Virus record (IMG/VR): IMGVR_UViG_3300047548_001236
Coordinates: 186,001-250,000 of that record
Reading direction: 5' to 3' (one strand)
Length of the DNA stretch: 64,000 nt
Shown here: positions 17,800 to 49,404 of the stretch, piece after piece
How positions within the stretch are numbered: position 1 is the first letter of the stretch
How the letters are laid out: each line of letters opens with the position of its first letter
Made by a program: the position numbers and the translations under genes
Notes under the pieces: model-generated
Database searches by the model: none
Told to the model about the DNA's origin: nothing
Seen by the model: the letters and a program-made list of their open reading frames with translations, nothing else

Positions 17800-18075
17800 T
17801 CAACCATTTGTCGGAACCTTTCTAATCTTGAGAGTTTTCTTCTTCTTGTCAATATCGATAATTGCACCGTTTGACAATAGATGGTTGTAGAGAGCTGTAA
17901 ACAACACGACAGCTTCCGAAAGATTTTTATCGTCGAATTTCAGCTCAATCAAACCATCTCTCGACGGTTTGACTGTTTTTGTGTTAGGTTTAAAGTGGGC
18001 GATCCACACATTGAGCGCATCGCCTGAGTCCCAGATGTAAAGATCACTGTCTTCCCCAAACCGCTGATATGCCAT
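17800..18075 (-). CDS. hypothetical protein
   Basis: ORF directly after the RNA ligase. Confidence 0.55.
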   Translation of the reverse strand: MAYQRFGEDSDLYIWDSGDALNVWIAHFKPNTKTVKPSRDGLIELKFDDKNLSEAVVLFTALYNHLLSNGAIIDIDKKKKTLKIRKVPTNG

Positions 18076-18076
18076 C

Positions 18077-22934: not shown

Positions 22935-25088
22935 TCAAGCGGCCTCACTCTTACGATTGGTAAACTGTGTGTCAAACGCCTTGGTTTCTTTGTTGTAAAC
23001 AAGTTCGAGAACAGTCCCTTGGATATCGTTTTCGAGGATCATATTGACAATCAGCGGTTCGATGTTTGCAACAACATACCCCTGCAGACCACGAGCACCG
23101 TGACGAGGCTGATAGTGATCAGCACAGAATGCTTTGATGCATTCGTCTGAGTAGACAATCTCCACACCACTTTGTTTGTATGCCGACTTCAAGCCGTTCA
23201 GCTCACGCTTGACAATCTTTTCGATCGAATCCAGCCCAAGTCGATCAAAACATACGATGTTCTGCCGACCAGCGAAGCGGTTGAGGAATTCTGGACGATA
23301 GACGCTATCCAGCTCCACGTTAGCAAGACGCTCAGCCTCTTCTGGAGAAAGAGTCTCGTCGAGGAAGAACGTTTGACCGATATTGGTCGTCATGATCACC
23401 ATCGACTCCGAGAAGTTGACCGTGCGACCGTGGTTATCGGTCAGGCGACCATCCGACAGAATCTGCAGGAACAGGTCGAACACAGCAGGGTCGGCTTTCT
23501 CAATTTCATCAAACAGAATGATGCGGTGAGGGTTCTGACGCATAGCATTGGTCAGGATACCACCACGTTCGCTACCTTCATAACCAGCAGGAGCACCAAT
23601 CAGCTTTGCGACAGAGTGCTTTTCCATGTATTCCGACATGTCGAAGCGAGTCAGAGCAGATTCATCGTCCTTGAGAGCATGAGCCAATGCTTTACAGACT
23701 TCCGTCTTACCAGTACCAGAAGGGCCCATGATCAGGAACGCTGCTTGAGGCTTGCCACCATTACGACGGCCAATACGTGCGACTTTGATCGCGTTGGCAA
23801 TCTTGTGAATCACTTCCTCCTGACCAAACACACGAGCGTTCAGCAGAGCTTCTAGGTTGCGAAGTTTCACTTTCTCATCCTCATTCAGCTTGGAAACAGG
23901 AATGCCCGACAGACGGCTAAACTCAGCAAGCACTTTTTCTTTCGTCAGAGCCAGTTGAGAGTTGATCTGCTCAGTCAACATATCAAACTCGGCACGGTTC
24001 TCGTTGATCACAAGTTCGTACTGACGAATCTGATTGCGGAGCTCGCGGACTGCAGGAGATTCAAAGCCACCCGAAGCTGCAACGCTCGCAAACATCTGGA
24101 TGCGACGAGAGTTTGCATCGGCTTCAACGACATCCTTTGCAGGAGGATTCTCAGCTTCCTCTTTCTTGATAGCAGCAATTTGCTCCTCAAGATCGATGAT
24201 AGCCACCTCACCATCACGCTGCAGTTGGAATAGCTCTTTGATGCGAGCTTGCGTCTTTGCATACTCCTGATCAAGAGCAATGATACGAGGATCATCTTCC
24301 TTGACGCCAGATGCGAGAAGATACGTCACTTGTGGATGTCGCTTGTGTGCATCAAGACGGTACGTTGCAAGAGCACGGTCAAGCAGGTTGCCAGAACGTT
24401 CAGGCTGAGCGCGTGACAAGCTGGCGTCACGTGAACGATACTTGTTTGTCAACTCGATTGCGGTCAGAACTGCATCATCTTCAATACGGATGTCGTGGTG
24501 TTTTGTCAGACCAAGAGCATTCGAACGAACAATGTCAATCAGATCCTGACCAAATGGCTCGTTCAGATCAATGATCGTATAGCATTGCTTCATGTCCGAG
24601 TGAGCAGCAAGAATCATGTCCAAATCAGGATCACGAGCTTCGAGGATCACTTGCGTGTGACCAGCCTTGACGGAAGCATTGAGCGAGTTGATGAAGTGAC
24701 TGCAGCCGTTGTTGCGTGCAGCCTCGATGAAGTCCCGAGTGTCTTCGATGATCAGAATAGAATCAGGAGTGCGCTTGAGGATCGTCAGTACCCCATTGAA
24801 CCCCTTGTTGATCTCTTCGTGATTGCCCGAAGCAAACAGCTCATCAACTTTCAGCCAGAACAGTCGTTTAGAGATGATATCGAACGGAACGTTAGGATCG
24901 TTCTTAAGAGCCTGGAGACCCATCACAAGTGCCGAAGCGCCTACACCACCAGGACCGACCAGAATGACTGATGCGGCTTTATTCCGCATCAGTACAGAAG
25001 TCAGACGCTTCATATCGTCAGCACGCCCGACCAGTTTGAAGTCGGGGTACTGTTTCAGAAGCTCATTACCAGTAATCAGATACTGCAT
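22935..25088 (-). CDS. ClpB-like AAA+ ATPase (no N-domain; degenerate NBD1)
   Basis: NBD2 GPSGTGKT, FDMSEYMEKHSVAKLIGAPAGY, DEIEKA, RPEFLNR, GAR; NBD1 GPGGVGAS; coiled-coil middle domain. Confidence 0.9.
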   Translation of the reverse strand: MQYLITGNELLKQYPDFKLVGRADDMKRLTSVLMRNKAASVILVGPGGVGASALVMGLQALKNDPNVPFDIISKRLFWLKVDELFASGNHEEINKGFNGVLTILKRTPDSILIIEDTRDFIEAARNNGCSHFINSLNASVKAGHTQVILEARDPDLDMILAAHSDMKQCYTIIDLNEPFGQDLIDIVRSNALGLTKHHDIRIEDDAVLTAIELTNKYRSRDASLSRAQPERSGNLLDRALATYRLDAHKRHPQVTYLLASGVKEDDPRIIALDQEYAKTQARIKELFQLQRDGEVAIIDLEEQIAAIKKEEAENPPAKDVVEADANSRRIQMFASVAASGGFESPAVRELRNQIRQYELVINENRAEFDMLTEQINSQLALTKEKVLAEFSRLSGIPVSKLNEDEKVKLRNLEALLNARVFGQEEVIHKIANAIKVARIGRRNGGKPQAAFLIMGPSGTGKTEVCKALAHALKDDESALTRFDMSEYMEKHSVAKLIGAPAGYEGSERGGILTNAMRQNPHRIILFDEIEKADPAVFDLFLQILSDGRLTDNHGRTVNFSESMVIMTTNIGQTFFLDETLSPEEAERLANVELDSVYRPEFLNRFAGRQNIVCFDRLGLDSIEKIVKRELNGLKSAYKQSGVEIVYSDECIKAFCADHYQPRHGARGLQGYVVANIEPLIVNMILENDIQGTVLELVYNKETKAFDTQFTNRKSEAA

Positions 25089-25103: not shown

Positions 25104-26768
25104 TCAGAAATTGAACGGACGCTTGACTTTGGCAACGGGTTCGTCATTAGCTGCCTTTTGATCAGCCCCCATGACAATATCCGCCACCACAGCCTTGGAT
25201 TCAAGGACAGTCTGTGCGACTTCCTCAGCAGTTTTCTGCATCACTTCCAGATTCTCACGCATGGTTTGAATACCATTACGAGTGAACTCGGTAGCAACCT
25301 TGTTGACTTCGCCATACTGAGCCAGGCTCTCGATAGCCCGAACCAGATCGTTGTTGCGCTCTTGGTAGCCCATAGCAATCCGCATCGACTCCTTCTGAGC
25401 GATAACGTCAGTGTTGTTGGCCATCGCGTTCAGAGTTTCAGCTGTCATGGCATTCGACTCGGCGATAGCAGCAGCGCCGACCGCTTGGATGACAGTCGAC
25501 AGACGATCAGCAACACCAGCAACACCACGCGCGTGCATGTCACGAGCCATCTGGATCTGTTGCTGGTTCGCGTCCCGCATGTTCTTGATGCGGATCGAAG
25601 CCGAGGTCAGATCAGCGACAGTTGCAGTCGTATCGACTGCCGAAACTTCCAGCATCTGGATGTGTTCGTCAAGATCACGCTGCTTGGTTTCACGAGTGAG
25701 CTTCTGCACCATATTCTCGTTTTCACCAGGAACGAGAATCTGCTCACGCATCTTTTTGTTCTCGTTTTCAGCGCCTTTGACACCTTCACCAAGAATTGCA
25801 TAGATAAAGCTCATCTGGCCGTTCGCATCTTCCAGATTCTTCGTCTGATCGCCCATGTGAGCAAGGTGACCACGAATCGTCTCGATCTTTTCCTTGGAGG
25901 TCTGAACGAAGTTGACCGCCGACTTGATCAGATTCTCAGACCGCTTCTGGTGATCTTCGGTCGCCAGGTTCAGCATGTCTTTCAGCTTCGCCTTTGCTTC
26001 TTGGTTGGTGATCTTCGATTCAACCGTGGTCTGGTTAGCACGAGCAGCTTCCGCCTCTGCCGCAATCTTTTGCAGCTCAGCAGCAGCATTTTCCATTGCG
26101 ACTTTGTTGCGAGCAATCTTCTCGACCGATTCGGCTTTGATGCCACCGAAGCCAAAGAAGCCCTTGTTCTGCTCTTCGACACGGTTCTGAGCTTTCAGTT
26201 CATCGATGCGAGATTGCACCTTGGTGATCTGCTCATCCAGTTCACGCTGACGCTGAGCAATCGCTTCCTGACGCTTCTCTTCATCTTTGATTTCACGGAA
26301 AGCATCCAGAGTCTGATTCTCGGCACGCAGAACATGCAAAGCATCGATGATATCCGTCAGAGGCTTCATGTCGTTTTCAAAATCGATCAGAGCTGTATTG
26401 ATGTCCTCGAACACTTGCTTAAGCGTTGCGAAATTTTTGGTGTCGGACATCTTGATGATCTGCGTCGCCATCGCTTCACGCTCAGCTTGCAGATACTCTT
26501 TAAACAGATCGAACGCTTTGACACGCTCACGATTCTCTTCACGAGTACCAGCAAACGTCAGCAGCTTCGTAACGGCTGCTTGCTTGGCTTCCGGCGACAG
26601 AGCTTCATCAAAAATCGTCTTGAAGAAGGGATTGGTTTCAATATTCGCAAAGCGAGAATCCTTCGCCTTGGTTTCCTCCTTCTGCTTCGCAGTCGGAGTT
26701 GCACGACCCCGAACGGCCAGGATTTCTTCCAGCTGCTGCTGACGGGAAAGTTGTGCAGATGCGCTCAT
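25104..26768 (-). CDS. long coiled-coil protein, possibly TelA/KlaA-like
   Basis: all-helical composition, KGFFGFGG motif; upstream of the ClpB-like gene. Confidence 0.5.
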   Translation of the reverse strand: MSASAQLSRQQQLEEILAVRGRATPTAKQKEETKAKDSRFANIETNPFFKTIFDEALSPEAKQAAVTKLLTFAGTREENRERVKAFDLFKEYLQAEREAMATQIIKMSDTKNFATLKQVFEDINTALIDFENDMKPLTDIIDALHVLRAENQTLDAFREIKDEEKRQEAIAQRQRELDEQITKVQSRIDELKAQNRVEEQNKGFFGFGGIKAESVEKIARNKVAMENAAAELQKIAAEAEAARANQTTVESKITNQEAKAKLKDMLNLATEDHQKRSENLIKSAVNFVQTSKEKIETIRGHLAHMGDQTKNLEDANGQMSFIYAILGEGVKGAENENKKMREQILVPGENENMVQKLTRETKQRDLDEHIQMLEVSAVDTTATVADLTSASIRIKNMRDANQQQIQMARDMHARGVAGVADRLSTVIQAVGAAAIAESNAMTAETLNAMANNTDVIAQKESMRIAMGYQERNNDLVRAIESLAQYGEVNKVATEFTRNGIQTMRENLEVMQKTAEEVAQTVLESKAVVADIVMGADQKAANDEPVAKVKRPFNF

Positions 26769-26812
26769 ATTATAGATCTCCTCTTGAGATGAATGTTGTC
26801 ATGTAGGTAGTG

Positions 26813-27265: not shown

Positions 27266-27273
27266 TATAAATA
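27266..27273 (+). promoter_or_regulatory. T4-type late promoter for the plus-strand operon
   Basis: TATAAATA 30 nt before ATG 27304. Confidence 0.85.
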
Positions 27274-27303
27274 GGTCATGTGGAATTTTGTTAGGGCCTT
27301 AAC

Positions 27304-28944
27304 ATGTTGAAATTTAAGCAGTATATCGTAGAATATCTGACGGACGAGCAAAGAGCTCGCTATAAGCAGTACAAGATGACACCGAAAGCTCGTCGTGACA
27401 CCGACCATTTTTTTGGTAAGGGTGTCGATGAGGTTCACGGTGAGATTGCCAACGACGACAAGTCAGAGATCCACACACGTCTGGAGAATCACCTTGGACA
27501 GCCTGTGTCACATGAAGACTACAAGCGCGGGGCAATTAAAGACAAGTATGGGCGTGATGTTAAGATCGGACGTTTGATCAAAGACAGCTCGCTGAGAAAT
27601 CAGTTTGACCAGGATCCGTCGAGGAAGCTGGAACGGGTAATTCACAAGACACGAACTGTTCGAGGAACAGAAGTAGCTGGGCAAACAAATCCTGTCCCTG
27701 ACGCTAACCACCCGACAGGTCACTCGTGGCATGATAGTAGCTGTAAGAACCTAGAGAGTGGTATCAACCGTCATTATCTACCCAAAGAAATCCAGCATGG
27801 AACGGTAGTGCATTTTGTCCACGATAGTAACGGACAAGAGATCTACAGGGCTACACTTCAACCCCACCATAACGAAAGTGGACGAGTGGCTTATAGTGTC
27901 GATGCAGAATATGGTATCAAACACCCACATTTTACAGCTGACGCTCACCGTGTTGCAACTGCTCTTAGTGGACAGTCTCGTGGTAACATTGTGCATGAGA
28001 AGCATGATGATGTTTACAATGACAATGGTGAGGAAACTATGATTCATCCAAAAGCCAGCGACGCGCAGTTGATGAAGCATCTTAAGACAGGTAATTGGTC
28101 TACAAAGTATGCCGTGCTCAAGCACCCAAATCTAAATCACAAGCATTTGATGCAGGCTGTTAAAGATGAGGACGAAGATAACGTGATGACCGCGTTGTCA
28201 CATCCAAATATAACGCACGAACACATTGAAAAGGCTATGAACAGACCTGATGCAAGCGACGAGTTGATAGGCATTGCCGCCAGCAACCCTAAAGCGACGT
28301 TAGAGCAACTGCAAAAAGGGCTTTCGTACCGTAGTGCTAGTGTTAGATATGAGGCAATGAAAAGTCCTAACGTGACGCCGGATATGTTGTCGAAGCTACA
28401 AGATGATAAGGATCGCCGAGTACGTTCTGCGGTTATAAAGCATCCTAATGCAGACGTATCTCATTTGAACCGCGCTATCAATGACCACGACTGGATGGTG
28501 CGAGCTGCCGTCGCCCGTAACAGCAAAGCACAGCCTCATCATCTTGATCAACTTGTGAACGACGAAGACAGCGATGTGGTCCACGCAGCGTCAAACAACC
28601 GTAACCTTTCCGCGGATCATATCACAAAAATCATGAAAAGCCCATTTGCTGACGCAAAGAAAAACGTGTTGTATCACAATAACTTCAATCCATCCCATCT
28701 CGGTATTGCAATACACGATAAGGATCCTGAGATCAGTATGTTGGCAGCTACCAATCACAGAGATATGTTGACACCAGAACATCTTGAGCATCTCGCTGAC
28801 CACAATAGCTGGCGTGTTAGACATACTGTCGCCAAGCACGAGCTAACGCCTATTAAAACACTCAAAAAACTAACAAAAGACGAAGACCCTGATGTTGTCC
28901 TTGCTGCTGGACAAAACCTGAAAAACAGTGAGAACCGTAAATGA
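27304..28944 (+). CDS. putative internal head protein, paralog 1 (conserved N-domain + HEAT/LRV-like repeats)
   Basis: MLKFKQYIVE N-terminus; EVAGQTNP...HSW...SCKN...HGTVVHF domain; ~24-aa HPN...D....VR repeats. Confidence 0.75.
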   Translation: MLKFKQYIVEYLTDEQRARYKQYKMTPKARRDTDHFFGKGVDEVHGEIANDDKSEIHTRLENHLGQPVSHEDYKRGAIKDKYGRDVKIGRLIKDSSLRNQFDQDPSRKLERVIHKTRTVRGTEVAGQTNPVPDANHPTGHSWHDSSCKNLESGINRHYLPKEIQHGTVVHFVHDSNGQEIYRATLQPHHNESGRVAYSVDAEYGIKHPHFTADAHRVATALSGQSRGNIVHEKHDDVYNDNGEETMIHPKASDAQLMKHLKTGNWSTKYAVLKHPNLNHKHLMQAVKDEDEDNVMTALSHPNITHEHIEKAMNRPDASDELIGIAASNPKATLEQLQKGLSYRSASVRYEAMKSPNVTPDMLSKLQDDKDRRVRSAVIKHPNADVSHLNRAINDHDWMVRAAVARNSKAQPHHLDQLVNDEDSDVVHAASNNRNLSADHITKIMKSPFADAKKNVLYHNNFNPSHLGIAIHDKDPEISMLAATNHRDMLTPEHLEHLADHNSWRVRHTVAKHELTPIKTLKKLTKDEDPDVVLAAGQNLKNSENRK

Positions 28945-30686
28945 AAAGATTCAAGTCGTTTCTATTGGAATATCTGACCGATAAACAGCGTGAGCGCTAT
29001 CAGCATATTGAAATGACACCTAAAGCACGTGCCGACTCCGATCATTTCTTTGGACAAGGAAATGATGAGGTGCATGGTAGTTTACATTCGATGACCGACA
29101 AATCCGAGATCCACAGGAAGATTGAAAATCACCTCGGACAAGAAATATCACACGAAGACTATAGAGCAGGTCTTGCTAGAGACCATCTAGGTAGACAGAC
29201 GCGTATCGGACGATTGATAAAAGACGATTCGTTGAGGAACGAGTTTGCGAAGGATCCTACAAGAGAAGGATCGCGTAGCGGTCAATCGCAATATACAACA
29301 AGAACAGTTCGTGGAGTGGAAGTTGCAGGACAGACAAACTCTGTACCTGATGCACAACATCCAAAAGGCCATTCGTGGGGTAACATAAGCTGTAAGAACA
29401 ACGAGACGGGAATAAACAAACACTATCTCGAAGATGAAATCAAGCACGGTACCGTTACTCACTTTGTTAAGGATCACAACGGCCAGGAGATCTATCGTGC
29501 AACACTACAACCTCATCATAACGATGAGGGTCATGTTGCGTATGCAATTGATTCGGAATATGGTATCAAGCACCCATCATTCACCGAAGACGCAAAAAGA
29601 GTAGCAGCCAAACTGTCTAATGCTGATCATACGAATGGTCTGTTTAGAAAGCACGGTAAAGTTTACCATGATAGTGAAGATAGTTATATGCTGCATCCTA
29701 ATGTATCATCAGAACAGCTTCACAAGTATATAGCGGCTCCGTCAGACGAATATGACGATCGCAAGCTACTCGTGAAAAGATTGGCAATAATGCACCCCAA
29801 CTCTGACAGCACTCATATCCAACGAGTGCTGGATCAAAAGGATACCCATCCTGTACTTTTGAACCGAATTGCAAGCCACCCTAAAATAACAGATGAACAA
29901 ATCAGCCGTCTATTGGACAATCCGCGCAACGGTGTTCGAAGAACTGTTGCTTCTAATCCTAACATTAAAGATCATCACATACGCAAGGCGCTGGCAGATA
30001 CGGATAACACCGTTCGTGCGAACATCATGTCAAATCCATCGACACCTACCCATCATATAATTAATGGAACAAAAGACCGCAGCTCGTTGGTTAGAGCTAC
30101 TGCATATGCAAATTCGAAGCTTCCGAAAGAACACCTTATCAAAGGTTTGGACGACGAAAGTGATCAGGTAAAAGCTACTGTTGTGGGAAATCGTTCGATA
30201 TCAGGTCAACATTTGACAGATGCGTTAAGAAATCCTAGCGAGCATGTAAGAGCTGCTGTATTTGACAATCCAAATGCAACTCCAGCTCATATAGAGCTTG
30301 CAAAGAAAGACCCTCATTGGCAAGTACAAATGAGAGCAGCCTCTCATAAAAATGCCACGAGCGACCAGCTACACGATTTCATTGATCACGGTTTCAGAGA
30401 AACCCATGTTAGTGTAGCAAAGAACCCTAATGCAAATATCAGCCATCTTAATAAACTGTATGACGTTGGTAACACGGATACAAAATTTGATGTGCTCGCT
30501 CACCCCAATGTCGATTCCAACCTTATTCACAAAGTAGTGAGCAACGACGCAGAAACGGACGATATTAAATATCATGCTCTAAAGCATCCAAATGCAACAG
30601 TTGAAAACCTTAAATGGGCTTCGCGTAATTCAGCGAGTCCGTTCCTCAGAGACGCTGCCCGTAAAATACTTGGAGCTAGAACATGA
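28941..30686 (+). CDS. putative internal head protein, paralog 2
   Basis: MKRFKSFLLE; same N-domain; repeats; ATGA coupling. Confidence 0.75.
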   Translation: MKRFKSFLLEYLTDKQRERYQHIEMTPKARADSDHFFGQGNDEVHGSLHSMTDKSEIHRKIENHLGQEISHEDYRAGLARDHLGRQTRIGRLIKDDSLRNEFAKDPTREGSRSGQSQYTTRTVRGVEVAGQTNSVPDAQHPKGHSWGNISCKNNETGINKHYLEDEIKHGTVTHFVKDHNGQEIYRATLQPHHNDEGHVAYAIDSEYGIKHPSFTEDAKRVAAKLSNADHTNGLFRKHGKVYHDSEDSYMLHPNVSSEQLHKYIAAPSDEYDDRKLLVKRLAIMHPNSDSTHIQRVLDQKDTHPVLLNRIASHPKITDEQISRLLDNPRNGVRRTVASNPNIKDHHIRKALADTDNTVRANIMSNPSTPTHHIINGTKDRSSLVRATAYANSKLPKEHLIKGLDDESDQVKATVVGNRSISGQHLTDALRNPSEHVRAAVFDNPNATPAHIELAKKDPHWQVQMRAASHKNATSDQLHDFIDHGFRETHVSVAKNPNANISHLNKLYDVGNTDTKFDVLAHPNVDSNLIHKVVSNDAETDDIKYHALKHPNATVENLKWASRNSASPFLRDAARKILGART

Positions 30687-32110
30687 AACCATTCAAATCT
30701 TTCCTTCTTGAATACTTGACAGATGCACAACGTCAGCAGTATAGTCAGTATAAAATGACTGATAAAGCTCGTGCAGACACAGATCACTTTTTTGGTGTTG
30801 GCAACGATAAAGTTACTGGTGCCTTGGGTCATACTACCGATAAATCCGAGATCCATCGAAAAATTGAAAAACACCTTGGTGCTGAAATATCTCACGATGA
30901 CTACCGTGCAGGCATTACGAAAGACAAATACGGTCGTGATGTTCGTATTGGCAGGGTGATAAAAGACGATAAGCTGAAAGCAGAATACGCAAAAGACCCA
31001 ACAAGGGAAGGAGCAAAGGTTGGCTCGCAATTCACAACCTCTACCGTGAGAGGGATTGAAGTTGCCGGACAGACTAATCCTGAACCAAACGCTGAGCATC
31101 CGAAAGGACACTCGTGGAGAGATCTTAGCTGTAAGAACGTCACCTCTGGAATTCAACGTCATATATTAGCCAACGAAATCGAACGTGGGACTGTTGTCCA
31201 CTTTGTCCACGATCGTAACGGACAAGAAATTTACAGGGCTACATTGCACCCTCACCACAACCAAGAGGGCCATGTGGCTTATGCTGTCGATTCGGAATAT
31301 GGTATCAAGCACCCAGCTTTTATGAAAAGTGCTCGCGACACTGCAGAGAAACTATCAGGTGAGTTAAAGGGAAGCCCTGTTTTTGAGAAAGACCGCGAGG
31401 TTTATGATGATAGTGGCGTAAGCCATATGATCCACCCGTCTGTTAGCAGTGAAGGGTTGACAAATCATCTAAAGTCGTCAAAGTTTACTGAACGTTATGC
31501 TGTATTGAGACACAAAAACGTTACGCCTGAGCACATTGAGATGGCGGTTAACGATTCAAATAGACACGTGAGACGTGAAGTAGCAAAATCACTTTTGTTG
31601 AAGCCTGAACATATCACAAAGATTATGGATAACCCAAATGAGAATAGTAGAGTGAAGATGGAGGCTGTCCAGAATCCTAATGCAACTGCTGAACATATAT
31701 CAAAAGCATTAGACTCTGATGATCATGATGTCCGTCTTTATGCCATGAGAAATCCAAACGTTAATGCAGATCACATATCAAAAGCGTTGGACGTGGACCA
31801 ACCACATCATATTCGTCAGATGGCGTTACAACACCGAAAAGTCACGCCTTCACATATAGCAAAGGTTCTCAGCCATAACCCAAGAGTACTAGATAGAAAC
31901 ACTCTTGCTATACAAGAGCAGGCAGCCGCACATCCAAATGCATCGAAAGAAAATATTGATCAAGCGTTACAACACCGCGAGCATACCGTGAGAGAGTTAG
32001 CGATAAATAACAGAAATGCAACGGACGAGCAAATCAGCCGGGGGTTGGACGATCCTCACCCGATGGTCAGAATATCAGCTAGATATGCAAAGAAAGCAAG
32101 AGAACAATGA
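30683..32110 (+). CDS. putative internal head protein, paralog 3
   Basis: MKPFKSFLLE; same N-domain; repeats. Confidence 0.75.
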   Translation: MKPFKSFLLEYLTDAQRQQYSQYKMTDKARADTDHFFGVGNDKVTGALGHTTDKSEIHRKIEKHLGAEISHDDYRAGITKDKYGRDVRIGRVIKDDKLKAEYAKDPTREGAKVGSQFTTSTVRGIEVAGQTNPEPNAEHPKGHSWRDLSCKNVTSGIQRHILANEIERGTVVHFVHDRNGQEIYRATLHPHHNQEGHVAYAVDSEYGIKHPAFMKSARDTAEKLSGELKGSPVFEKDREVYDDSGVSHMIHPSVSSEGLTNHLKSSKFTERYAVLRHKNVTPEHIEMAVNDSNRHVRREVAKSLLLKPEHITKIMDNPNENSRVKMEAVQNPNATAEHISKALDSDDHDVRLYAMRNPNVNADHISKALDVDQPHHIRQMALQHRKVTPSHIAKVLSHNPRVLDRNTLAIQEQAAAHPNASKENIDQALQHREHTVRELAINNRNATDEQISRGLDDPHPMVRISARYAKKAREQ

Positions 32111-34311
32111 TTAGATTCAAAACATTCATTAACGAAGACGTTTTACTCGAGAACCGTATCGAGTTCCTCAAGCAACAAAACCCAACAATCGACACGACTC
32201 ACGACACCTTGGCTAAGCACAAGGACGCTGGGGCAATCATTGACCACTTTGCTAAGAAGGCGGACCCAACGCCAACCAAGGCTCATACTCAGTGGATCGT
32301 CAATCAATATAAGAAGCAGACAATCCGTCAGGAAGATGCCCCTCAAATCAAGTCAACGCTGAATGATTTTGAAACAGTGAAGCCTCGCCTAGAAAAGAAG
32401 GACCTCAACCAATACAAGGATATTGGTGAGTTGAGAGACGCTGTCGCTACTCAGAAGAGCCAAGCAGAGAAGGTCGTGAAGGCAAAGAAAACAACCGCTG
32501 CAAACAAGTCTGCTGATCTTGAAAAGATGTACGATGAAGACGGTGTGACTGGATATAAAATCCCCAATAAAGAGTCGAGCATCAGGAACTACGGTCCTGC
32601 TGGCGAGGTGAAACAGACACACTGGTGCACCGCTGCCAACTCAGGCAACAACATGTTCAACCACTATAAAGGTGGCAAGTATACCATGCACTTCCCTAAT
32701 GGAGAAGTGCTGCAATTCCACCACCAATCCAATCAAATCATGGACAAATACGATCGTCGCGTTGAAGAAGGCGATCCACGTTTTGCACCGTATGAGCACC
32801 ACATCACCAAATTCATCCACCAAACCAAGCCCCTCGAGAGCGATTCAAAGATCGATAGGTTCCACCACTATGAACCATACGAGATAGATGATGCGATTGC
32901 TGGATACAAGAAGAGGTTGAGTGATAGCAACAATGATCCTACTGCCAGTGGGGTCAGCTACCACCACACAACAAAAAATCTGACAGACATTAGCGAAAAG
33001 GCTAAGCTAAGTGACAAGCAATTCGATGCGATCCATTCTCTTCCTATTGGTAAAGATTACCTTAACCGACCAGAGGGCGTTCCACTCAGCCTGAGCAAAA
33101 ACAAAAAGCTGACACATGAGCAGGTGGGTAAGTTGCTAGGCGCCCATGACGAGAAGGTGCTTGATCATCACGAAGAGCAGCTTGCACAGAACCCTGTTGT
33201 GAAGGACGAACATATTGACGCATTGCTCAAATCACCGAGACTCAGCAAAGAAGCATTCCACTCGCTGGCCAACAATCCTAACTTGAAACAACATCACATC
33301 GACGCTCTTATCAAAGATCCAGAGACGCATGATAAGCTGGGTAGCAACCACGCGATCACTTTGACCAAGGATCATCAGGATCAGATAATAGATAGTGGCA
33401 AGTGGAAGGAAGGGTTTGCACATCGCAGTGACCTGCACCCTGATACCGTCGAGCATTTGCTGGGAAGTGGGTATGGAGCACACATCCATACGCACCTGGT
33501 CAACAACCCACATGTTGAGATGGATGATCGCCAGCTTCGTAGTTTGCATGCGCAGCACAATAGAGGCGAGTCTGCAATTTCTGGAGCCATCTTCGATTCT
33601 CCAAAGACGTCTCCAGAGACGAGAGAGCATGTGTTCAATACTCATATGGATCATCTTGAAAGAAGCGGTGGAGGTTCTAGCCCTGCTCTTGATACGATGA
33701 TCCGTTCCAAGCATTTCACAAAAGACCACCTCGATCGAGTGCTGGATGTTGCTGACAAAACAGATAAACAACCAGGTGCAACGAACACAATGAGAATATA
33801 CGCTTCGAGATATCTCAAGGCATCACCTGCTCAGCTTGATCGTCAGGTCAACGCTAGCAAGCAAGGCACCGCTCCAGTAGGTTATCTGCTTGACAATAAG
33901 AACCTGAAACCCGAACACTTGAAAACGTTGTTCAACGCTGCAGCTTCTAGCAAAACGGAGTATGAAAAGGAAAAGGTGATGGAGCATCCATCCATCAACG
34001 GGGATGTTCTCCATCACGTGTTCGATAGTGGACATAGCTGGGATAGAACACGTGTTCTACACCACCCAAAAGTTCAAATGTCTCACTTCCAAAAAGCTAT
34101 GGATGTGGGTCAATCCTTGCATGGCGCGATATCGTCTTCACCGAGTGCTCCGCCTTCGACTCTGAGTAAGCTGGCTGACTCGCCGTTCTCGTTCGTGCGT
34201 CAAAACATTGCGAGTCACAAGAACACACCTCAAGAAACCCTTGCTAACCTAGCAAACGATTCAGCCGAAGAGGTGTCGTCCATTGCTAAGAAGCGTTTGA
34301 AGTTGAAATAA
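32107..34311 (+). CDS. putative internal head protein with a different N-domain (WCT motif) + helical repeats
   Basis: MIRFKTFINE; THWCTAA...MFNHY...QFH..S.Q.MD; C-terminal repeats. Confidence 0.7.
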   Translation: MIRFKTFINEDVLLENRIEFLKQQNPTIDTTHDTLAKHKDAGAIIDHFAKKADPTPTKAHTQWIVNQYKKQTIRQEDAPQIKSTLNDFETVKPRLEKKDLNQYKDIGELRDAVATQKSQAEKVVKAKKTTAANKSADLEKMYDEDGVTGYKIPNKESSIRNYGPAGEVKQTHWCTAANSGNNMFNHYKGGKYTMHFPNGEVLQFHHQSNQIMDKYDRRVEEGDPRFAPYEHHITKFIHQTKPLESDSKIDRFHHYEPYEIDDAIAGYKKRLSDSNNDPTASGVSYHHTTKNLTDISEKAKLSDKQFDAIHSLPIGKDYLNRPEGVPLSLSKNKKLTHEQVGKLLGAHDEKVLDHHEEQLAQNPVVKDEHIDALLKSPRLSKEAFHSLANNPNLKQHHIDALIKDPETHDKLGSNHAITLTKDHQDQIIDSGKWKEGFAHRSDLHPDTVEHLLGSGYGAHIHTHLVNNPHVEMDDRQLRSLHAQHNRGESAISGAIFDSPKTSPETREHVFNTHMDHLERSGGGSSPALDTMIRSKHFTKDHLDRVLDVADKTDKQPGATNTMRIYASRYLKASPAQLDRQVNASKQGTAPVGYLLDNKNLKPEHLKTLFNAAASSKTEYEKEKVMEHPSINGDVLHHVFDSGHSWDRTRVLHHPKVQMSHFQKAMDVGQSLHGAISSSPSAPPSTLSKLADSPFSFVRQNIASHKNTPQETLANLANDSAEEVSSIAKKRLKLK

Positions 34312-34322
34312 GAGAGCCAAAC

Positions 34323-35297
34323 ATGGAATACGAACTCACATCTCAGAAGCTCGACAACAACACCCATCTAGTGAAGAACAAGCACACGAACGAGCCAGTC
34401 GCCATACTGAAAAGAACTGGCGGCTACAAGCGAAATGAAGTCAAGTCGGAATGGCACCCCGACTACAAGCTGTTGCACCCTGAGGTTCACGAAAACCTTC
34501 TGACGAGAAACTTCCACAAGCCACATGACAGCGTTTCTGATGCTGTTAGCAACATCACATACATATCGCAAGATCACGCATTTGGTAAAAACTCGCGAAT
34601 CGATCCTATCAAAACACGGTATGCCGGCGATTTTGATACCAAGACACCTTATGGCCAAGATACGAAAGGGCATAAGTGGCATGTGTTGGACGATGACGGG
34701 AAACACGTCGCTTCTATAACGTCATTCCACGGACCAAACCAAATTCACCGCGAGTCTCCTGTAAGTGTCGGTTGGGTCAAATCGTTCAACGATAGCGTTC
34801 CCGATAGTGTCAAAGAAGCGGCAAATTCAAAGCACGGAGGTCAGACTCTTTATGCGACGATGAACCGTATTCGTTACATGATGGACAACAAGGGTAAAGA
34901 GCCTCGCTTTGTCGGTACGCATGTCGACCCTGCGTCTAAGACTAAGATGTTCAAAACGAATCTACCACCAGAAGAAGCGTCGAAGGCGTATGAAGAGCAT
35001 CTAGCAAAGAGGCTAGGAAACGGCTACACGTTTACACGTCACGGACCCACGCTGTTTACAGCAGAGAAGCCAGCGCAAGGAAGGTACGATAGAACTTACC
35101 AACACCACGTTATAGCTATGCCTGGTCAGCTTCATCATATCGAGTCTTCGCTCCATCACCCAGACTACGATACAACGACCAACAAGAACAAGGAAGTTGT
35201 TGAGTCGTATATGCTGAATCCTAATAAGAGACCTTACCCGTTGACGCTCGAAGAGCATCTCAAGGCACAACGTTTCCTCCTTAAAAAGGCTAGATAA
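34323..35297 (+). CDS. His-rich late hypothetical protein
   Basis: ORF within the late operon, same composition; no N-terminal targeting motif. Confidence 0.7.
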   Translation: MEYELTSQKLDNNTHLVKNKHTNEPVAILKRTGGYKRNEVKSEWHPDYKLLHPEVHENLLTRNFHKPHDSVSDAVSNITYISQDHAFGKNSRIDPIKTRYAGDFDTKTPYGQDTKGHKWHVLDDDGKHVASITSFHGPNQIHRESPVSVGWVKSFNDSVPDSVKEAANSKHGGQTLYATMNRIRYMMDNKGKEPRFVGTHVDPASKTKMFKTNLPPEEASKAYEEHLAKRLGNGYTFTRHGPTLFTAEKPAQGRYDRTYQHHVIAMPGQLHHIESSLHHPDYDTTTNKNKEVVESYMLNPNKRPYPLTLEEHLKAQRFLLKKAR

Positions 35298-37391
35298 ATG
35301 CGCAGCTTCAAATCGTATCTGATAGAGTATATAACCGACAGCCAACGTGAACGTTACAAAAACGTCCACATGACCGACAAAGCTCGTGCCGATACCGATG
35401 AATTTTTCGGTGTCGGTAACGACAAGGTTCACGGCGAAATCGAACACGGTGAAAAGTCCGAGATACATAAGCAACTCGAGAACCATCTCGGGCGAGAGGT
35501 ATCTCATGAAGAATACAACAAGGGAACCGTGAAAGACAAACACAACCGTGATGTGAAGATCGGACGTTTGATCAAGGACAATGACCTACGTATTCAGTTT
35601 GACAAGGACCCATCTCGTCAGATTGCAAAAGCACCCACTCTGAAAACAACGACCGTTCGCGGTGTTGAGGTTGCAGGGCAGACAAACCCTGTACCCAATG
35701 CTGAACATCCTGAGGGACATTCGTGGAAGGGTTATAGCTGTAAGAACATTGAGTCAGGAATCAATAGGCGTTATCTCGAGCCAGAAATCAAGCACGGGAC
35801 TGTTGTTCACTATGTACATGATCACAACGGCCAAGAAATATATCGAGCAACGCTTCACCCGCACCATAACGAACATGGTGATGTTGCATATGGCTTGGAT
35901 GCTGAGTATGGTATCAAACACCCGAAGTTCACAGCTGATGCCCAGCGCGTCGCGAAGGAGCTCTCTGGTGAATATAAGCCAGGAACGTTCTGGAAGCACC
36001 CGGAAGTATACAACGACAACGGCAAGAGTAATATGTTCCACCCTGGCATATCCGAAGGGCATATTTCAGATATCTTAACACACGGTTCAACCAGTGACAA
36101 ACATGATATCATGATGCACCCTGCTTTCACAAGCGATCACGTGTCCAAGGTTCTGAAATACGAACCAAATGGAGCACTGAGAGGACACGCTTTATTGAGA
36201 AGCGATCTTGTGACACCAGAACACATCACGACAGCTTTGAACGATCCCGACGACCACGTTAAGCGTATGGCTCTACACAACGGGTCCAAAATTACAGCGG
36301 ATCATGTTAAACGAGCTCTTGAGCCTGACATGCCAGCGGACATTCGCCGTCATATGGCTAAAAACCGCCATGCAACACCTGAATTGCTTTCACAAGTTAT
36401 CAAGCACGATCCGAACTCGGAAGTTGTGCAAACGGCTGTAATGAACAAGAATGCTACCCCAGAACATATAACTCAGGCTTTACAACATCCTGACGTTTAC
36501 GTGAGACAAGCGGCATTGACGCGTTCTGACCTCGTCAATGACAGCCATCTGCACACCGCTGTCCGTGACTCCAGTCCTCGTATCACAACACATGCAGCTT
36601 TTCATCACAAAGCTAAACCAGAACATCTCGACTACATTATGGATCATGGACATAACAACGCACTCGAAGCTATGTTCCACCGTGAAAGCAACGCAACGTC
36701 TGAACACATTGGCAAAGCTCTTCGTAGCACCGATCCAAGATTCACGACAACTATAAAAGAGTTCGCTGCATCACATCCCAACGCATCTTCGGAAAATATC
36801 ATGGATGCGTTGAAACTAAACAACCCACGCATCACCTATGATGTGATCGATAATCACGATAATCTCAGCAAAGAGCATATGGATCACATAGTGAAGCATA
36901 CGCCTGATGATGACGATATGATATCCGCAATATCTCGTCACCCATCGTTGCGTGCCGAGCACATTACGCATCTTCTCGATAGACCGGGCATATCAAAGAA
37001 CATATTCGCAAGTCGTATATACAAACAGCTAGCCAACCACCGGAATCTCGCTCCGGAACATATGGAGAGACTGGCCAAGCACGACAACTGGAATGTTCGA
37101 AATATCATTGCCAATCGTCACGATGCTCCTGCTCATGTTCTCTCACATATCGTCAGACACGATCCAGAAGAAGCAAACAGATATGATGCTATCATGAACG
37201 ACAACACTCATCCGGACGATCTGGAGCATGCTGTCAAACATGATGAAAGCGTATTCAATAAGGAAGCTGCACTGCGCAACTTCAATACGCCGGTACATGC
37301 AATCAAGCACGTTTTGGATACATATAAGACAGGCGATCTGAGAAAACAAGCCATTAGCTCTCTGCGTCAAAGAGGAATACAAGCCGAATGA
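35298..37391 (+). CDS. putative internal head protein, paralog 4
   Basis: MRSFKSYLIE; same N-domain; longest repeat array. Confidence 0.75.
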   Translation: MRSFKSYLIEYITDSQRERYKNVHMTDKARADTDEFFGVGNDKVHGEIEHGEKSEIHKQLENHLGREVSHEEYNKGTVKDKHNRDVKIGRLIKDNDLRIQFDKDPSRQIAKAPTLKTTTVRGVEVAGQTNPVPNAEHPEGHSWKGYSCKNIESGINRRYLEPEIKHGTVVHYVHDHNGQEIYRATLHPHHNEHGDVAYGLDAEYGIKHPKFTADAQRVAKELSGEYKPGTFWKHPEVYNDNGKSNMFHPGISEGHISDILTHGSTSDKHDIMMHPAFTSDHVSKVLKYEPNGALRGHALLRSDLVTPEHITTALNDPDDHVKRMALHNGSKITADHVKRALEPDMPADIRRHMAKNRHATPELLSQVIKHDPNSEVVQTAVMNKNATPEHITQALQHPDVYVRQAALTRSDLVNDSHLHTAVRDSSPRITTHAAFHHKAKPEHLDYIMDHGHNNALEAMFHRESNATSEHIGKALRSTDPRFTTTIKEFAASHPNASSENIMDALKLNNPRITYDVIDNHDNLSKEHMDHIVKHTPDDDDMISAISRHPSLRAEHITHLLDRPGISKNIFASRIYKQLANHRNLAPEHMERLAKHDNWNVRNIIANRHDAPAHVLSHIVRHDPEEANRYDAIMNDNTHPDDLEHAVKHDESVFNKEAALRNFNTPVHAIKHVLDTYKTGDLRKQAISSLRQRGIQAE

Positions 37392-39319
37392 TAAAGTTCA
37401 AATCGTTTTTGTTGGAATATCTAACAGACAAGCAAAGGGAACGGTATAAAGACGTTCGCATGACCGATAAGGCTCGCGCTGACACGGACCATTTCTTTGG
37501 AGCTGGGAATGACAAGATACACGGCGAGATCGAGCATGACGACAAGTCAGAAATTCATCACCAGCTCGAAGCCCATCTAGGCCAGCCTATTTCTCACGAG
37601 GATTACAAAAAAGGAACGACTCTCGATCGTCACGGTCGAGAAGTGAAGATTGGCCGTCTGATTAAGGATAACGACCTTCGCAATCAGTTTGACCAAGATC
37701 CATCACGTAAGATAGCCAAAACGTCAACGCTCAAAACCACAACGGTACGTGGTACGGAAGTAGCTGGCCAGACAAATCCTGAGCCAAACGCAGAGCATCC
37801 AAACGGCCACTCGTGGCACGACATAAGCTGTAAAAACGTTGAGAATGGCATAAACAAGCATTATCTTGATAAAGAGATCCAACACGGCACCGTTGTCCAT
37901 TTTGTTCACGACCACAACGGGCAGGAAATCTACCGAGCAACATTACACCCACATCACAACGATGAGGGTCATACCATCTACTCCGTCGATGCGGAATATG
38001 GTATAAAACACCCCAACTTCACACAGGATGCTCATCGTGTCGCGAGCCAGCTTTCTGGCGAGTATAAAAGGGGAACATTTGTCAAAAACCGCAATGTGTA
38101 TAACGACAATGGAATGAGGTATGCTCTTCACCCAGCAGCACCTGGAGCTGAGGTTGATAAAGAAACCCACGAAGAACTCGCAAAACCGTACGAAAAGCAG
38201 AGTGCTGAGAAGCTGAGAGTGCTGCTAACACATCCAAATATTTCAGGCGAAACGTTGTCACACGTTCTACACACTACTCAGGAGACGCCTGCAGACGTAT
38301 GGGGTCTTGCAGCTAAACACCCAAATCTGAAAGGTGAACACCTAGAAAAAGCGTTGAACAGCACACATAGTCACACAGCGACTTCGGCTCTAAAGAATCC
38401 TAATGTTACAGCCGAACATCTGCATAAAGTGTTGGACGCTCCAGATACCAATCGTAACTGGGCTCAAAAACGAGCTGTGTTCGAATCCCCTGCTGTCAAT
38501 TCGAGCCACATTGAGAAAGCTCTCAAGACCGATCCTAGCGATGATTTGTTTCATGCTGCAGCACAACATCCTAAGACAACATCTGCGCAGTTGAACGTTG
38601 TCGCTCAGCATTACCCATACATTGCTCTCCAACACAGAAACGTCAAGCCATCCAACATCGATAAATGGTTGGATAGTGACGATGGTCGTCTACGTCAAGG
38701 AGCTGCTCTGCATAAAGCGGCTACTGATGCTAACCTCACAAAAGCTCTGTCACAGGATCCTGAAACGCGATCAGGCACTGTTTGGGCTGCTCTAGGCAAC
38801 CGTAACATAAAACCACATCACATCGAACCGTTTCTGAATCACAGTAACAGAGAACTCCGCATTGCGGCTGCTGAAAGTCCTGGAATCTCTCCTGAGCAGA
38901 TTGATAAAGTTCTTGACCACGAGAAAGATCGGCATGTTTTAAGTACATTGATCCACAGAACCAATACCAAGGTTACAGATGCACATCTACGCAAGGTTCT
39001 GAACGGTGATTATCCGATGAGAGTTAAAGAAAAGGTAGCAGAGCATCCGAACATATCTTCTGATACGATCAACAAGGCGTTGGATTTTGCTCATCAAAAC
39101 GATAATGGGAAGATGGCGCTCGACGCTCTTAGTCACGACCACGTAACCTCAGACAACCTACACCACGCGTTGAAACTCGACAATCCTCGCATCGAGAGCG
39201 ACGTCTTGTGGCATAATCAGGCTACACCAGAACACTGGGAATACGTTGCCAAGCACAGTAAAAGCCCAGGTAACGTTGCTGTTGCCGAGCGGTTCCTGGC
39301 AAACGGTAGAAGAGGATAA
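37388..39319 (+). CDS. putative internal head protein, paralog 5
   Basis: MIKFKSFLLE; same N-domain; repeats. Confidence 0.75.
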   Translation: MIKFKSFLLEYLTDKQRERYKDVRMTDKARADTDHFFGAGNDKIHGEIEHDDKSEIHHQLEAHLGQPISHEDYKKGTTLDRHGREVKIGRLIKDNDLRNQFDQDPSRKIAKTSTLKTTTVRGTEVAGQTNPEPNAEHPNGHSWHDISCKNVENGINKHYLDKEIQHGTVVHFVHDHNGQEIYRATLHPHHNDEGHTIYSVDAEYGIKHPNFTQDAHRVASQLSGEYKRGTFVKNRNVYNDNGMRYALHPAAPGAEVDKETHEELAKPYEKQSAEKLRVLLTHPNISGETLSHVLHTTQETPADVWGLAAKHPNLKGEHLEKALNSTHSHTATSALKNPNVTAEHLHKVLDAPDTNRNWAQKRAVFESPAVNSSHIEKALKTDPSDDLFHAAAQHPKTTSAQLNVVAQHYPYIALQHRNVKPSNIDKWLDSDDGRLRQGAALHKAATDANLTKALSQDPETRSGTVWAALGNRNIKPHHIEPFLNHSNRELRIAAAESPGISPEQIDKVLDHEKDRHVLSTLIHRTNTKVTDAHLRKVLNGDYPMRVKEKVAEHPNISSDTINKALDFAHQNDNGKMALDALSHDHVTSDNLHHALKLDNPRIESDVLWHNQATPEHWEYVAKHSKSPGNVAVAERFLANGRRG

Positions 39320-39320
39320 G

Positions 39321-39344
39321 AAAAAAGCCCCTTTCGGGGCTTTT
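39321..39344. terminator. bidirectional intrinsic terminator
   Basis: AAAAAAGCCCC-tttc-GGGGCTTTT between convergent genes. Confidence 0.88.
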
Positions 39345-39346
39345 CC

Positions 39347-39577
39347 TTAGGGACGAGCGATTAGCGTGTCCAGCTTTGCATTGATTTGTCGCAACGCTTC
39401 TGCTGTTGCCTCTGATTCAGTACGAGAAGCTTCCATCTGCGTTGTAGCAGTTTCGAGTTTGAGAAGCACTTCATCGATCCGCGGTTGGACAGTTTGCGTT
39501 GAAAGAAGATACGCAAGACCGATTGCGGCAATCGCCATAAGCGGAAGAGTGAAGAAGACAGCTTTCAAAAATGACAT
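39347..39577 (-). CDS. small membrane-anchored coiled-coil protein
   Basis: TM followed by coiled coil. Confidence 0.55.
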   Translation of the reverse strand: MSFLKAVFFTLPLMAIAAIGLAYLLSTQTVQPRIDEVLLKLETATTQMEASRTESEATAEALRQINAKLDTLIARP

Positions 39578-39595
39578 GTATTTTCCTTTCAAGTG

Positions 39596-39985
39596 TTAGC
39601 TGTAGTTAACGTGGATTTGAGCGAAGTAGTGGAAGTTACCCATCGGTTCTTTGATTGACCGAACAACAAACTCTGGAACAAAACGACCGAACCGTTCGAT
39701 GAATTGATCTTTATCAAGAATTTCGGCGCCCATTGCCATCCAACCATCAAACGTCTCGGCAAAGTCGCGAATTAAGATGTCCTCGACTTTTGTCTTTAGA
39801 ACGCCTCGATTAAACACAACCCTACCATTTTCATCTCGTTGTTCCTCGAAGTGAGGCTTAACCTCATAATCTTCATCTTTTGGGTGAAGATACGTGATCA
39901 GGATGGAAATAGTTCTACCTTCACCGGTTGCTGCGTAGTCTGATACAACGAAGTGCACTTTATCACCTTTTGAAATAATACACAA
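39596..39985 (-). CDS. hypothetical protein
   Basis: ORF in operon. Confidence 0.55.
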   Translation of the reverse strand: MCIISKGDKVHFVVSDYAATGEGRTISILITYLHPKDEDYEVKPHFEEQRDENGRVVFNRGVLKTKVEDILIRDFAETFDGWMAMGAEILDKDQFIERFGRFVPEFVVRSIKEPMGNFHYFAQIHVNYS

Positions 39986-40235
39986 CAGACGTTCCAGTCA
40001 GACCATTGCACGAGATAGTAACGTCTACAAATTCGAGATTGCCGTCCTCTGACGCGTGTTCGGAAGCCCATTTATATGCTTCCTCGAAAGAAGCAAACCC
40101 CTCTGTCAGGTGAGCATACGAGTAATGACGCCAATAGTCTTCGTCATACTCAGATGGTTTTGGTGAAGGATAGAACAGGATGGGATGGTAAGTCCCACCC
40201 TGTGTATCTTCTGCGATACAGATTTTGTTAGTCAT
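39963..40235 (-). CDS. hypothetical protein
   Basis: ATGA-coupled to the ligase. Confidence 0.55.
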   Translation of the reverse strand: MTNKICIAEDTQGGTYHPILFYPSPKPSEYDEDYWRHYSYAHLTEGFASFEEAYKWASEHASEDGNLEFVDVTISCNGLTGTSVVYYFKR

Positions 40236-49399: not shown

Positions 49400-49404
49400 T
49401 TTGT

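Follow-up and report, generated by a model that had tools for sequence, protein, structure and literature searches.

A predicted late operon of seven genes

We analysed a window of 64,000 nucleotides (nt), bases 186001-250000 of the IMG/VR record IMGVR_UViG_3300047548_001236. The whole record (282,855 bp) is rated complete by CheckV, and a look-up of the sequencing runs places the phage in freshwater metagenomes. The window contains a run of seven genes, five of which are paralogs that join a common N-terminal domain (the N-domain) to C-terminal repeat arrays. These genes and their predicted signals are listed below, with positions counted from the first base of the window.

27266-27273, plus strand: T4-type late promoter element TATAAATA, separated by 30 nt from the ATG that opens the operon
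27304-28944, plus strand: paralog 1, 546 amino acids (aa); starts MLKFKQYIVE (27304-27333), N-domain to about residue 250, then LRV/HEAT-like repeats
28941-30686, plus strand: paralog 2, 581 aa; starts MKRFKSFLLE, N-domain, about 11 repeats; its start overlaps the preceding stop (ATGA)
30683-32110, plus strand: paralog 3, 475 aa; starts MKPFKSFLLE, N-domain, about 6-7 repeats
32107-34311, plus strand: 734-aa protein; starts MIRFKTFINE, a different N-domain (residues 1-226), LRV-type repeats
34323-35297, plus strand: 324-aa protein; no start resembling a capsid-targeting sequence (CTS), no detectable family
35298-37391, plus strand: paralog 4, 697 aa; starts MRSFKSYLIE, N-domain, the longest repeat array
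37388-39319, plus strand: paralog 5, 643 aa; starts MIKFKSFLLE, N-domain, about 13 repeats
39321-39344, plus strand: intrinsic terminator, with an A-run, a GCCCC-TTTC-GGGGC hairpin and a T-run; begins 2 nt past the last stop codon

Neighbouring genes meet in ATGA overlaps or are separated by gaps of 0-12 nt. Because the genes abut, with TATAAATA upstream and a terminator after the last stop, 27266-39344 is predicted to form a single late operon of seven genes. The terminator region folds at -23.6 kcal/mol in RNAfold (50-nt window). The octamer TATAAATA, which we take to be the T4 late-promoter element, occurs 46 times in the genome versus 2-18 times in ten controls of the same composition, and it sits 0-40 nt upstream of the open reading frames (ORFs) for the tail sheath, a gp22-like scaffold, an S77 protease, the baseplate tube cap and the head-tail adaptor. 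Octamers with one mismatch (xATAAATA) lie 17-35 nt upstream of a sixth paralog and of two other ORFs bearing the N-terminal tag described below. Another one-mismatch octamer, GATAAATA at 32002-32009 on the plus strand, lies within the preceding coding sequence about 100 nt upstream of the 734-aa gene and may be an internal late promoter. A consensus scan for sigma-70 promoters and terminators gave sites no commoner than in shuffled sequence and did not pick up the real terminator.

Two contigs of an aquatic metatranscriptome run (X4) are 97-98% identical to N-domain parts of paralogs 2 and 3, covering 29352-29734 and 30679-30926. They come from a related strain and DNA carry-over is possible, so transcription is not proven by these matches.

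A constant domain joined to variable repeat arrays

A first-pass annotation of this stretch had proposed five paralogs with a common N-region, starting at 27304, 28941, 30683, 35298 and 37388. These ORFs exist, all on the plus strand, and they align throughout their first ~250 residues. A sixth full paralog of 626 aa lies outside the window, at G000:C1:44758-46635 on the minus strand of the genome. The N-region had been called near-identical, which is too strong a description: the N-domains (about 240-250 aa) are just 58-73% identical between paralogs. The C-terminal repeat regions are 25-36% identical, and the proposed architecture of a constant module with a variable solenoid is borne out by the difference between the two values. 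The motifs EVAGQTN, GHSW..SCKN, EIYRATL, EYGIKHP and VY.D...HP are present in all five window paralogs, as had been noted, whereas HGTV, also listed as invariant, reads RGTV in the gene at 30683. In diverse members of the family the invariant or near-invariant residues are Trp142, Ser146-Cys147, Arg182, Asp104, Arg107, Gly139, Gly153 and Tyr238 (numbering of the 546-aa protein). Each protein has a single Cys, within the SC motif. A conserved zinc site was considered and rejected, as beyond this Cys the His residues vary in the wider family.

The C-terminal parts had been described as arrays of ~24-aa His-rich repeats. The HEAT/LRV-like arrays are real, but their period is ~26-28 aa and the His content of 7-10% extends over the whole proteins rather than the repeats alone. 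Scores exceed the Pfam gathering cut-offs for HEAT in the 546-aa protein (39.7 bits) and the 697-aa protein (26.3 bits), and for LRV in the 546-aa protein (38.9 bits) and the 734-aa protein (26.9 bits). The 581-aa and 475-aa proteins score slightly below the cut-off, and the 643-aa protein has no Pfam HEAT or LRV match. A unit of the form H/N-P-N-x-[ST]-x-x-H-[LI] is visible in all five arrays when they are laid out, and the units are homologous by alignment.

The N-domain defines a large family, well above anything that chance would produce. An exhaustive search with its profile recovered 952 cluster representatives at an expectation value (E) <=0.001, 131 of them at E<=1e-30, with clusters counted at 50% identity (about 950 in all). 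A word-indexed search in which a single N-domain was the query yielded 160 proteins. The domain is nearly always N-terminal, in proteins of 250 to ~1,670 aa, and the C-terminal parts of 45 diverse members are mostly HEAT/LRV (also HEAT_2 and LRV_2) and occasionally DUF4116. PHROGs, NCBIfam and Pfam assign no family to the paralog N-domain. Single frames with two N-domains also occur, for example in a 1,824-aa stop-to-stop ORF (L008:1106-6577) and in P0121-P0124 (representatives of 959-1,673 aa with two matched stretches); these may be fused tandem genes or the result of stop-codon read-through.

The 734-aa protein shares its repeats with the paralogs (BLASTP), but its N-domain is not matched by the hidden Markov model of the paralog N-domain and bears a T-x-W-C-T-A-A motif instead. 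PHROGs, NCBIfam and Pfam hold no family for this second N-domain either. Orthologs of the 734-aa protein occur in L053-L058, with similar tag-like starts. The 324-aa protein has no match in Pfam, PHROGs, NCBIfam or a tblastn search of cultured phages. Its gene is kept directly downstream of the 734-aa gene in L053/L009, L054 and L055/L057, and the 324-aa protein could be a partner or chaperone of the 734-aa protein.

An N-terminal tag and the head-maturation machinery

The six paralogs and the 734-aa protein all start with M-x-x-F-K-x-[FY]-[LI]-x-E, and in the operon proteins this decapeptide ends in IVE, LLE, LIE or INE, which corresponds to the (L/I)-x-E site of a gp21-type protease. Of the 4,318 candidate starts in the whole genome, those that fit M-x-x-[FYW]-x-x-[FYW]-[LIVM]-x-E belong to 11 distinct genes, versus 0.73 expected. 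These are the six paralogs, the 734-aa protein and four unrelated ORFs, and they represent at least 5 unrelated families. In T4, the CTS reads MKTYQEFIAE, is removed by one cleavage and is enough to encapsidate foreign proteins (PMC8442874). In T4 Alt, the cleavage sites are ITE-6 and LTE-619 (PMC5694885), and the T4 internal proteins are described as a diverse anti-defence set with the CTS as their sole common part (PMC3012670).

The four unrelated tagged ORFs lie outside the window, in the genome coordinates of G000:C1, and are candidate head-packaged proteins on the strength of their starts.

14440-15726, minus strand: 429 aa, matches DUF6934; lies behind a TATAAATA
18761-19117, minus strand: 119 aa, weakly GNAT/RimI-like
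42760-43164, minus strand: 135 aa, starts MKTFKQFITE, near T4 MKTYQEFIAE
66410-66784, minus strand: 125 aa, starts with a CTS-like decapeptide

The machinery that such a tag would require is encoded in the same genome: a gp21-type prohead protease (Peptidase_S77, E 3.8e-37), a T4_CASP scaffold (2.3e-61) and a gp23-like major capsid protein (E 4.5e-87 to solved T4 gp23). In the propeptide of this capsid protein, ILE and LME motifs immediately precede the conserved mature N-terminus.

The tag also extends beyond this phage. A relaxed form of the pattern is found in 178 of 292 family members from other metagenomes, and all 14 tandem copies on a related contig retain the tag. Many members that do not match the pattern retain an MKxFKxF[LI] box, followed by a linker of variable length before the start of the domain (LLEYLT). 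Because the box is kept when the linker separates it from the domain, this arrangement argues for an independent signal. In the AlphaFold model of paralog 1, residues 1-6 have a predicted local distance difference test score (pLDDT) <50.

These observations bear on the possibility that the proteins are not packaged at all, and act late in the cytoplasm as chaperones, adaptors or regulators, with the decapeptide being a mere helix start or a translation-related feature. HEAT and LRV solenoids are indeed typical of scaffolding and adaptor modules, a ClpB-like chaperone and DNA-metabolism genes adjoin the operon, and homologs in Dickeya and Erwinia phages are tagless and lie in recombination modules. 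However, a cytoplasmic role does not sit well with a decapeptide that heads unrelated proteins at ~15 times the chance rate and that matches the T4 CTS in both sequence and cleavage-motif position (PMC8442874), nor with the presence of two homologs in purified virions. We therefore hold a purely cytoplasmic role to be decidedly unlikely.

Homologs in the virions of cultured phages

Two homologs in cultured phages connect the operon to virions that have been analysed by mass spectrometry (MS). In the Ralstonia jumbo phage RsoM2USA, the 674-aa product of ORF132 is hit by the N-domain profile at E 6e-36 to 3.5e-40 (positions 1-248). The protein starts with MKTFKQFLNTLME, which is of the MKTFKQFL type, and its computed mass is 76.62 kDa. 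Among the ten abundant bands of purified RsoM2USA virions identified by liquid chromatography and tandem MS is 'ORF132, 76.64 kDa' (PMC8504454). The second case concerns the 734-aa protein, the N-domain of which is 31% identical to EST35_0205 of phage PA5oct (BLASTP E 9e-23). EST35_0205 is annotated as 'structural protein, ESI-MS/MS' (electrospray ionisation) and is located in a run of virion proteins detected by MS (PMC7318152).

The members in cultured phages are distant, at 25-35% identity. They are found in the Dickeya phages JA11/13/29/33, Pseudomonas phage Lu11, many Erwinia jumbo phages, RsoM2USA and Agrobacterium phage Atu_ph07 (AUZ95153), and all were confirmed by the family profile at E 1e-25 to 1e-41. 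Lu11 and JA29 carry two or three adjacent paralogs each. The member in Erwinia phage pEa_SNUABM_5 (L064:3887-6064) is labelled 'putative exonuclease SbcD'; we reject this label, as the protein has no such domain and the adjacent gene carries Metallophos; the label was apparently shifted by one gene.

Virion proteins could also be external, that is, fibres, whiskers or receptor-binding proteins in which the N-terminus is an anchor and the variable arrays recognise host receptors. Phages with multiple receptor-binding proteins typically have several paralogous genes in tandem, expressed late, whose products are part of the virion and combine a constant N-terminus with a variable C-terminus. The variable part here is an alpha-solenoid, not a beta-helix or a fibre fold, and the proteins have no similarity to the tail or fibre families of PHROGs and Pfam. 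The operon also lies far from the tail and baseplate genes (genome 107-181 kb), and an N-terminal tag bearing (L/I)-x-E is a feature of the head core. An external location is thus very improbable.

Old paralog lineages under unequal constraint

Each window paralog has its own orthologs in other metagenomic phages, with repeat regions that are 45-78% identical. For example, identity between paralog 4 (697 aa) and its 697-aa ortholog P0020 is 81% for the N-domain and 78% for the C region. Further counterparts of the same or nearly the same length are 88% and 75% identical (626 versus 626 aa) or 72% and 48% identical (581 versus 590 aa) in these two parts. Since each paralog has its own same-length orthologs, the paralogs are, as judged from these comparisons, old and stably inherited lineages, each conserved, in which the repeats evolve at a rate equal to or above that of the N-domain.

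The first-pass annotation had suggested comparing copy number across related phages. It varies from a single copy to a tandem array of at least 14. The 14 copies are found on L003/L004 (IMGVR_UViG_3300044940_000646, 40,275 bp), where the N-domains of the closest pairs share 87-92% of their residues; the expansion is extreme and specific to this lineage. The ratio of nonsynonymous to synonymous substitution rates (dN/dS), also proposed in that annotation as a check of constant and variable parts, lies in this array at 0.06-0.16 in the N-domain and at 0.23-0.68 in the repeats. The N-domain of the array is thus under much stronger purifying selection than the repeats. Elsewhere, short or broken N-domain pieces lie between intact copies (L006:5471-8670) and look like decaying paralogs.

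Conserved DNA blocks had been suggested as an aid to recombinational shuffling of the arrays, and GAATATGGTATCAA is one such block. It is present in three of the five genes (27907, 29556 and 31295), and the longest exact DNA common to any two window paralogs is 10-27 nt, usually 10-15. Shuffling was rejected because the shared tracts do not exceed 27 nt and each paralog has orthologs of its own length, in a pattern of stable orthology.

The same data can be used to weigh whether the proteins are bulk structural components of the head interior, which organise or condense DNA or set the head pressure and have no effector role after ejection. The N-domain would then be a core- or DNA-binding module, and the solenoids would fill space or contact DNA. 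The packaging evidence is the same for this reading, RsoM2USA ORF132 is present in an amount visible as a Coomassie band, and the His content of 7-10% and the elongated solenoids would suit it; large internal protein masses are also known in jumbo phage heads (PMC5694885). A bulk role is harder to reconcile with six or more old paralog lineages, each conserved with its own orthologs. The invariant Trp, Ser-Cys, Arg and Asp together with a dN/dS near 0.1 point to specific functions, and the isoelectric point (pI) is near neutral, not basic. We regard both parts of this explanation, the structural role and the binding or space-filling functions of the modules, as unlikely.

Fold of the N-domains

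An AlphaFold model of residues 1-262 of paralog 1 (27 sequences) shows an alpha/beta core, with a pLDDT of 84.7 and a predicted template modelling score of 0.72. The most conserved motif, EVAGQTN...GHSW...SCKN, forms a long loop of lower confidence in this model. The structural check that had been proposed earlier gave a confident model, and a Foldseek search of solved structures in the Protein Data Bank returned nothing below E 0.04. Because there was no significant match to a solved structure, no activity can be assigned to the N-domain. A weak fold signal suggests a GNAT-like core as a lead only; structural neighbours of the N-domain in the ESM Atlas are also GNATs. Against this stand Foldseek E-values that are all >0.04, the absence of a Pfam acetyltransferase match in the N-domain, and the absence of the canonical Q/R-x-x-G-x-G/A motif for binding coenzyme A (CoA) at the predicted beta4-alpha3 junction, which reads EYGIKHPxF in the alignment.

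The first-pass annotation had also seen a loose resemblance between the SC motif and PcfJ-like domains. The points in common are a small residue followed by Cys after a Gly-ended helix and then a G-[KT]-T-x-[IV] strand, motifs that hhalign keeps in register. For the five paralogs, sequence and profile comparisons lend a PcfJ identity no support. The PcfJ family PF14284 is absent from the N-domain at E<=10, from the whole genome at E<=1 and from five related phage records (HMMER), in scans where pCF10 PcfJ, the positive control, scores 1.1e-43. The program hhalign, with 13 PcfJ sequences from pCF10 and Herelleviridae phages as the alignment to be matched, put the probability at 0.4% for the paralog domain; its value for the 734-aa domain is 2.1%. 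A profile-versus-single-sequence comparison gave no PcfJ support for the five paralogs. The sole search to list PcfJ clusters for the paralogs was a protein-language-model feature search, at a score often reached by chance.

In the case of the 734-aa protein, a model of its N-domain (mean pLDDT 71) drew several Foldseek matches to a 'PcfJ-like protein' (E 3e-3 to 0.2, template modelling score, TM, <0.3), and a PcfJ likeness of this modelled domain is an open lead. We know of no function for PcfJ itself, and a homolog search with pCF10 PcfJ returned almost only near-copies from Enterococcus. The type gene on pCF10 (L021:15874-17984) adjoins a gene of the AcrIIA9 anti-CRISPR family, which hints that PcfJ-like proteins may belong to anti-defence islands. 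In AlphaFold DB and BFVD, both N-domains match uncharacterised proteins that couple a domain of similar kind to LRR, ankyrin, WG or DUF4116 repeats. This suggests that a small Cys-bearing domain with a repeat array is a recurring design.

A model of head-packaged internal proteins

Taken together, we consider it probable that the locus is a late operon of seven genes for capsid-targeted, head-packaged internal ('ejection') proteins, probably injected, which combine a constant N-domain with paralog-specific solenoids. The operon would be transcribed from the TATAAATA late promoter, and the N-terminal decapeptide of all but the 324-aa protein would bring the products to the scaffolding core of the prohead. 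There, the gp21-type S77 prohead protease would cut the tag after the conserved Glu of (L/I)-x-E. The mature proteins would remain in the head with the DNA and enter the host upon infection. Once inside, the N-domain, with its invariant Trp...Ser-Cys loop, Arg and Asp on an alpha/beta core, may provide one shared activity, while the LRV/HEAT-like solenoid of each paralog may pick a different partner. By analogy with T4 IPI* and Alt, the likely purpose would be counter-defence or host take-over. Of this, the architecture, the tag and its excess, the genes for protease, scaffold and capsid protein, the promoter and terminator motifs, the two homologs in virions and the tighter constraint on the N-domain are direct observations. 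We infer packaging, cleavage and injection in this phage, along with all post-entry steps; the common activity of the N-domain and the choice of counter-defence or take-over targets by the solenoids are presumed in the same way.

Several points weigh against this model. The phage is uncultured and known here from its genes alone, and the virion detections concern homologs in two cultured phages. The promoter is called from its motif alone, and the operon is surrounded by genes of DNA and nucleotide metabolism. The paralogs have a pI of 6.7-8.8, near neutral, compared with the basic internal proteins of T4. They are also large, although T4 Alt is of similar size. Glu10 runs into a conserved EYLTDxQR stretch, and residues 11-20 are modelled at a pLDDT of 84; because this stretch is modelled with confidence, part of the 'tag' could be domain structure. 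The unsuccessful Foldseek search belongs here as well. Finally, the N-domain homologs of Dickeya, Erwinia and Lu11 phages lack the tag, and those of Dickeya and Erwinia adjoin genes for SSB and SbcD-like proteins. As these homologs are tagless, packaging may be a lineage-specific use of the N-domain.

Viewed from this model, the earlier interpretation is partly supported. The effector role that it proposed is consistent with the evidence that the proteins are packaged in the head. The operon with its late promoter, the decapeptide of capsid-targeting type and the virion data on relatives were outside its account.

A bolder extension, which we find possible but doubtful, is that the proteins represent a widespread and so far undescribed class of injected phage effectors. 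Each would consist of a capsid-targeting tag, a conserved enzymatic head that bears a thiol (Trp...Ser-Cys) on an alpha/beta core of GNAT/PcfJ-like type, and an alpha-solenoid that can be exchanged and directs the enzyme to a different host protein. In freshwater T4-like jumbo phages, the class would have grown to 6-14 or more paralogs per arsenal, a ready-made counter-defence kit for the first minute of infection.

Proteins carried in the head act ahead of phage gene expression and are prime candidates for anti-defence and host take-over. To our knowledge, few such early-acting proteins are known outside T4, P1, N4 and the phiKZ-like phages. Here, a large family of about 950 clusters has apparently been recruited to a T4-type packaging route and diversified through repeat arrays. 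The combination of the N-terminal tag and the TATAAATA promoter is a simple criterion by which the likely head cargo of uncultured T4-like jumbo phages can be listed from sequence, and RsoM2USA ORF132 offers a cultured model for packaging, processing and function.

Genomic setting

The phage is a T4-superfamily jumbo phage and a distant ally of the Atu_ph07/XacN1/RsoM2USA group, since its genome contains genes for a gp23-like capsid protein, a gp21-type protease, T4_CASP, a sheath, a tube cap and an adaptor. By megablast, the locus has no match in cultured phages. The neighbours of the operon encode a ClpB-like AAA+ protein (49.6% identical to its counterpart in Agrobacterium phage Atu_ph07), an ATP-dependent DNA ligase, two RNA ligases, a Dda-like helicase, NAMPT and NMNAT/Nudix. 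Among them, the accessory genes at 47902-50817, 14873-19201 and 22935-25088, all on the minus strand, comprise the NAD salvage pair (NAMPT and NMNAT/Nudix), the two RNA ligases and the ClpB-like AAA+ protein, which is nearest to that of Atu_ph07; this is the usual accessory set for this group of jumbo phages. Just upstream of the operon, a 554-aa ORF at 25104-26768 (minus strand), which has no PHROG match, is overlapped nearly fully by a 544-aa ORF at 25158-26792 (plus strand), and just one of these opposed ORFs is likely to be real. The AT skew on the coding strand is +0.19 to +0.26 across the operon (28000-40000), and about -0.05 to -0.1 in the minus-strand genes beside it.

Comparison with known systems

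Known systems resemble parts of these proteins to different degrees. For the C-terminal arrays, the closest are the LRV (PF01816) and HEAT (PF02985) alpha-solenoids, as the arrays match both models. The phage repeats differ in being His-rich, with the H/N-P-N-x-[ST]-x-x-H-[LI] signature, and several paralogs fall under the Pfam cut-offs. The solenoid is also joined here to a phage-specific N-domain and a capsid-targeting-like tag.

For the N-domains, the lack of a HMMER match, hhalign probabilities of 0.4% and 2% and TM scores <0.3 set the phage proteins apart from PcfJ, and the GNAT lead has the limits given above. RsoM2USA ORF132 has the same N-domain, including D-[IV]-A-G-M-S...W-x-S-C-M, the MKTFKQFL-type start and a long C-terminal extension. 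It differs in being a single copy, in having a C-terminal part with no Pfam repeat match and in its identity of ~30% to the window proteins.

The comparison that underlies our model is with IPI, IPII, IPIII and Alt of T4. The cargo here is far larger (475-734 aa), consists of a conserved domain with LRV/HEAT-like repeats, and is near neutral rather than basic. The family has been expanded to 6-14 or more paralogs, no sequence similarity to the T4 internal proteins or Alt was found, and we infer packaging, cleavage and injection from sequence. While T4-type packaged internal proteins are a known kind, we found no description in the literature of this cargo family, its modular build or its expansion. 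The likeness lies in the presumed route into the head. In both cases, an N-terminal tag of ~10 aa with the same pattern ends in an (L/I)-x-E prohead-protease site, and this tag is common to otherwise unrelated proteins of one phage. Both sets of genes are clustered and polymorphic and have a T4-type late promoter, predicted here from its motif, and in both genomes the S77 protease is of gp21 type and is accompanied by a gp22-like scaffold and a gp23-like capsid protein.

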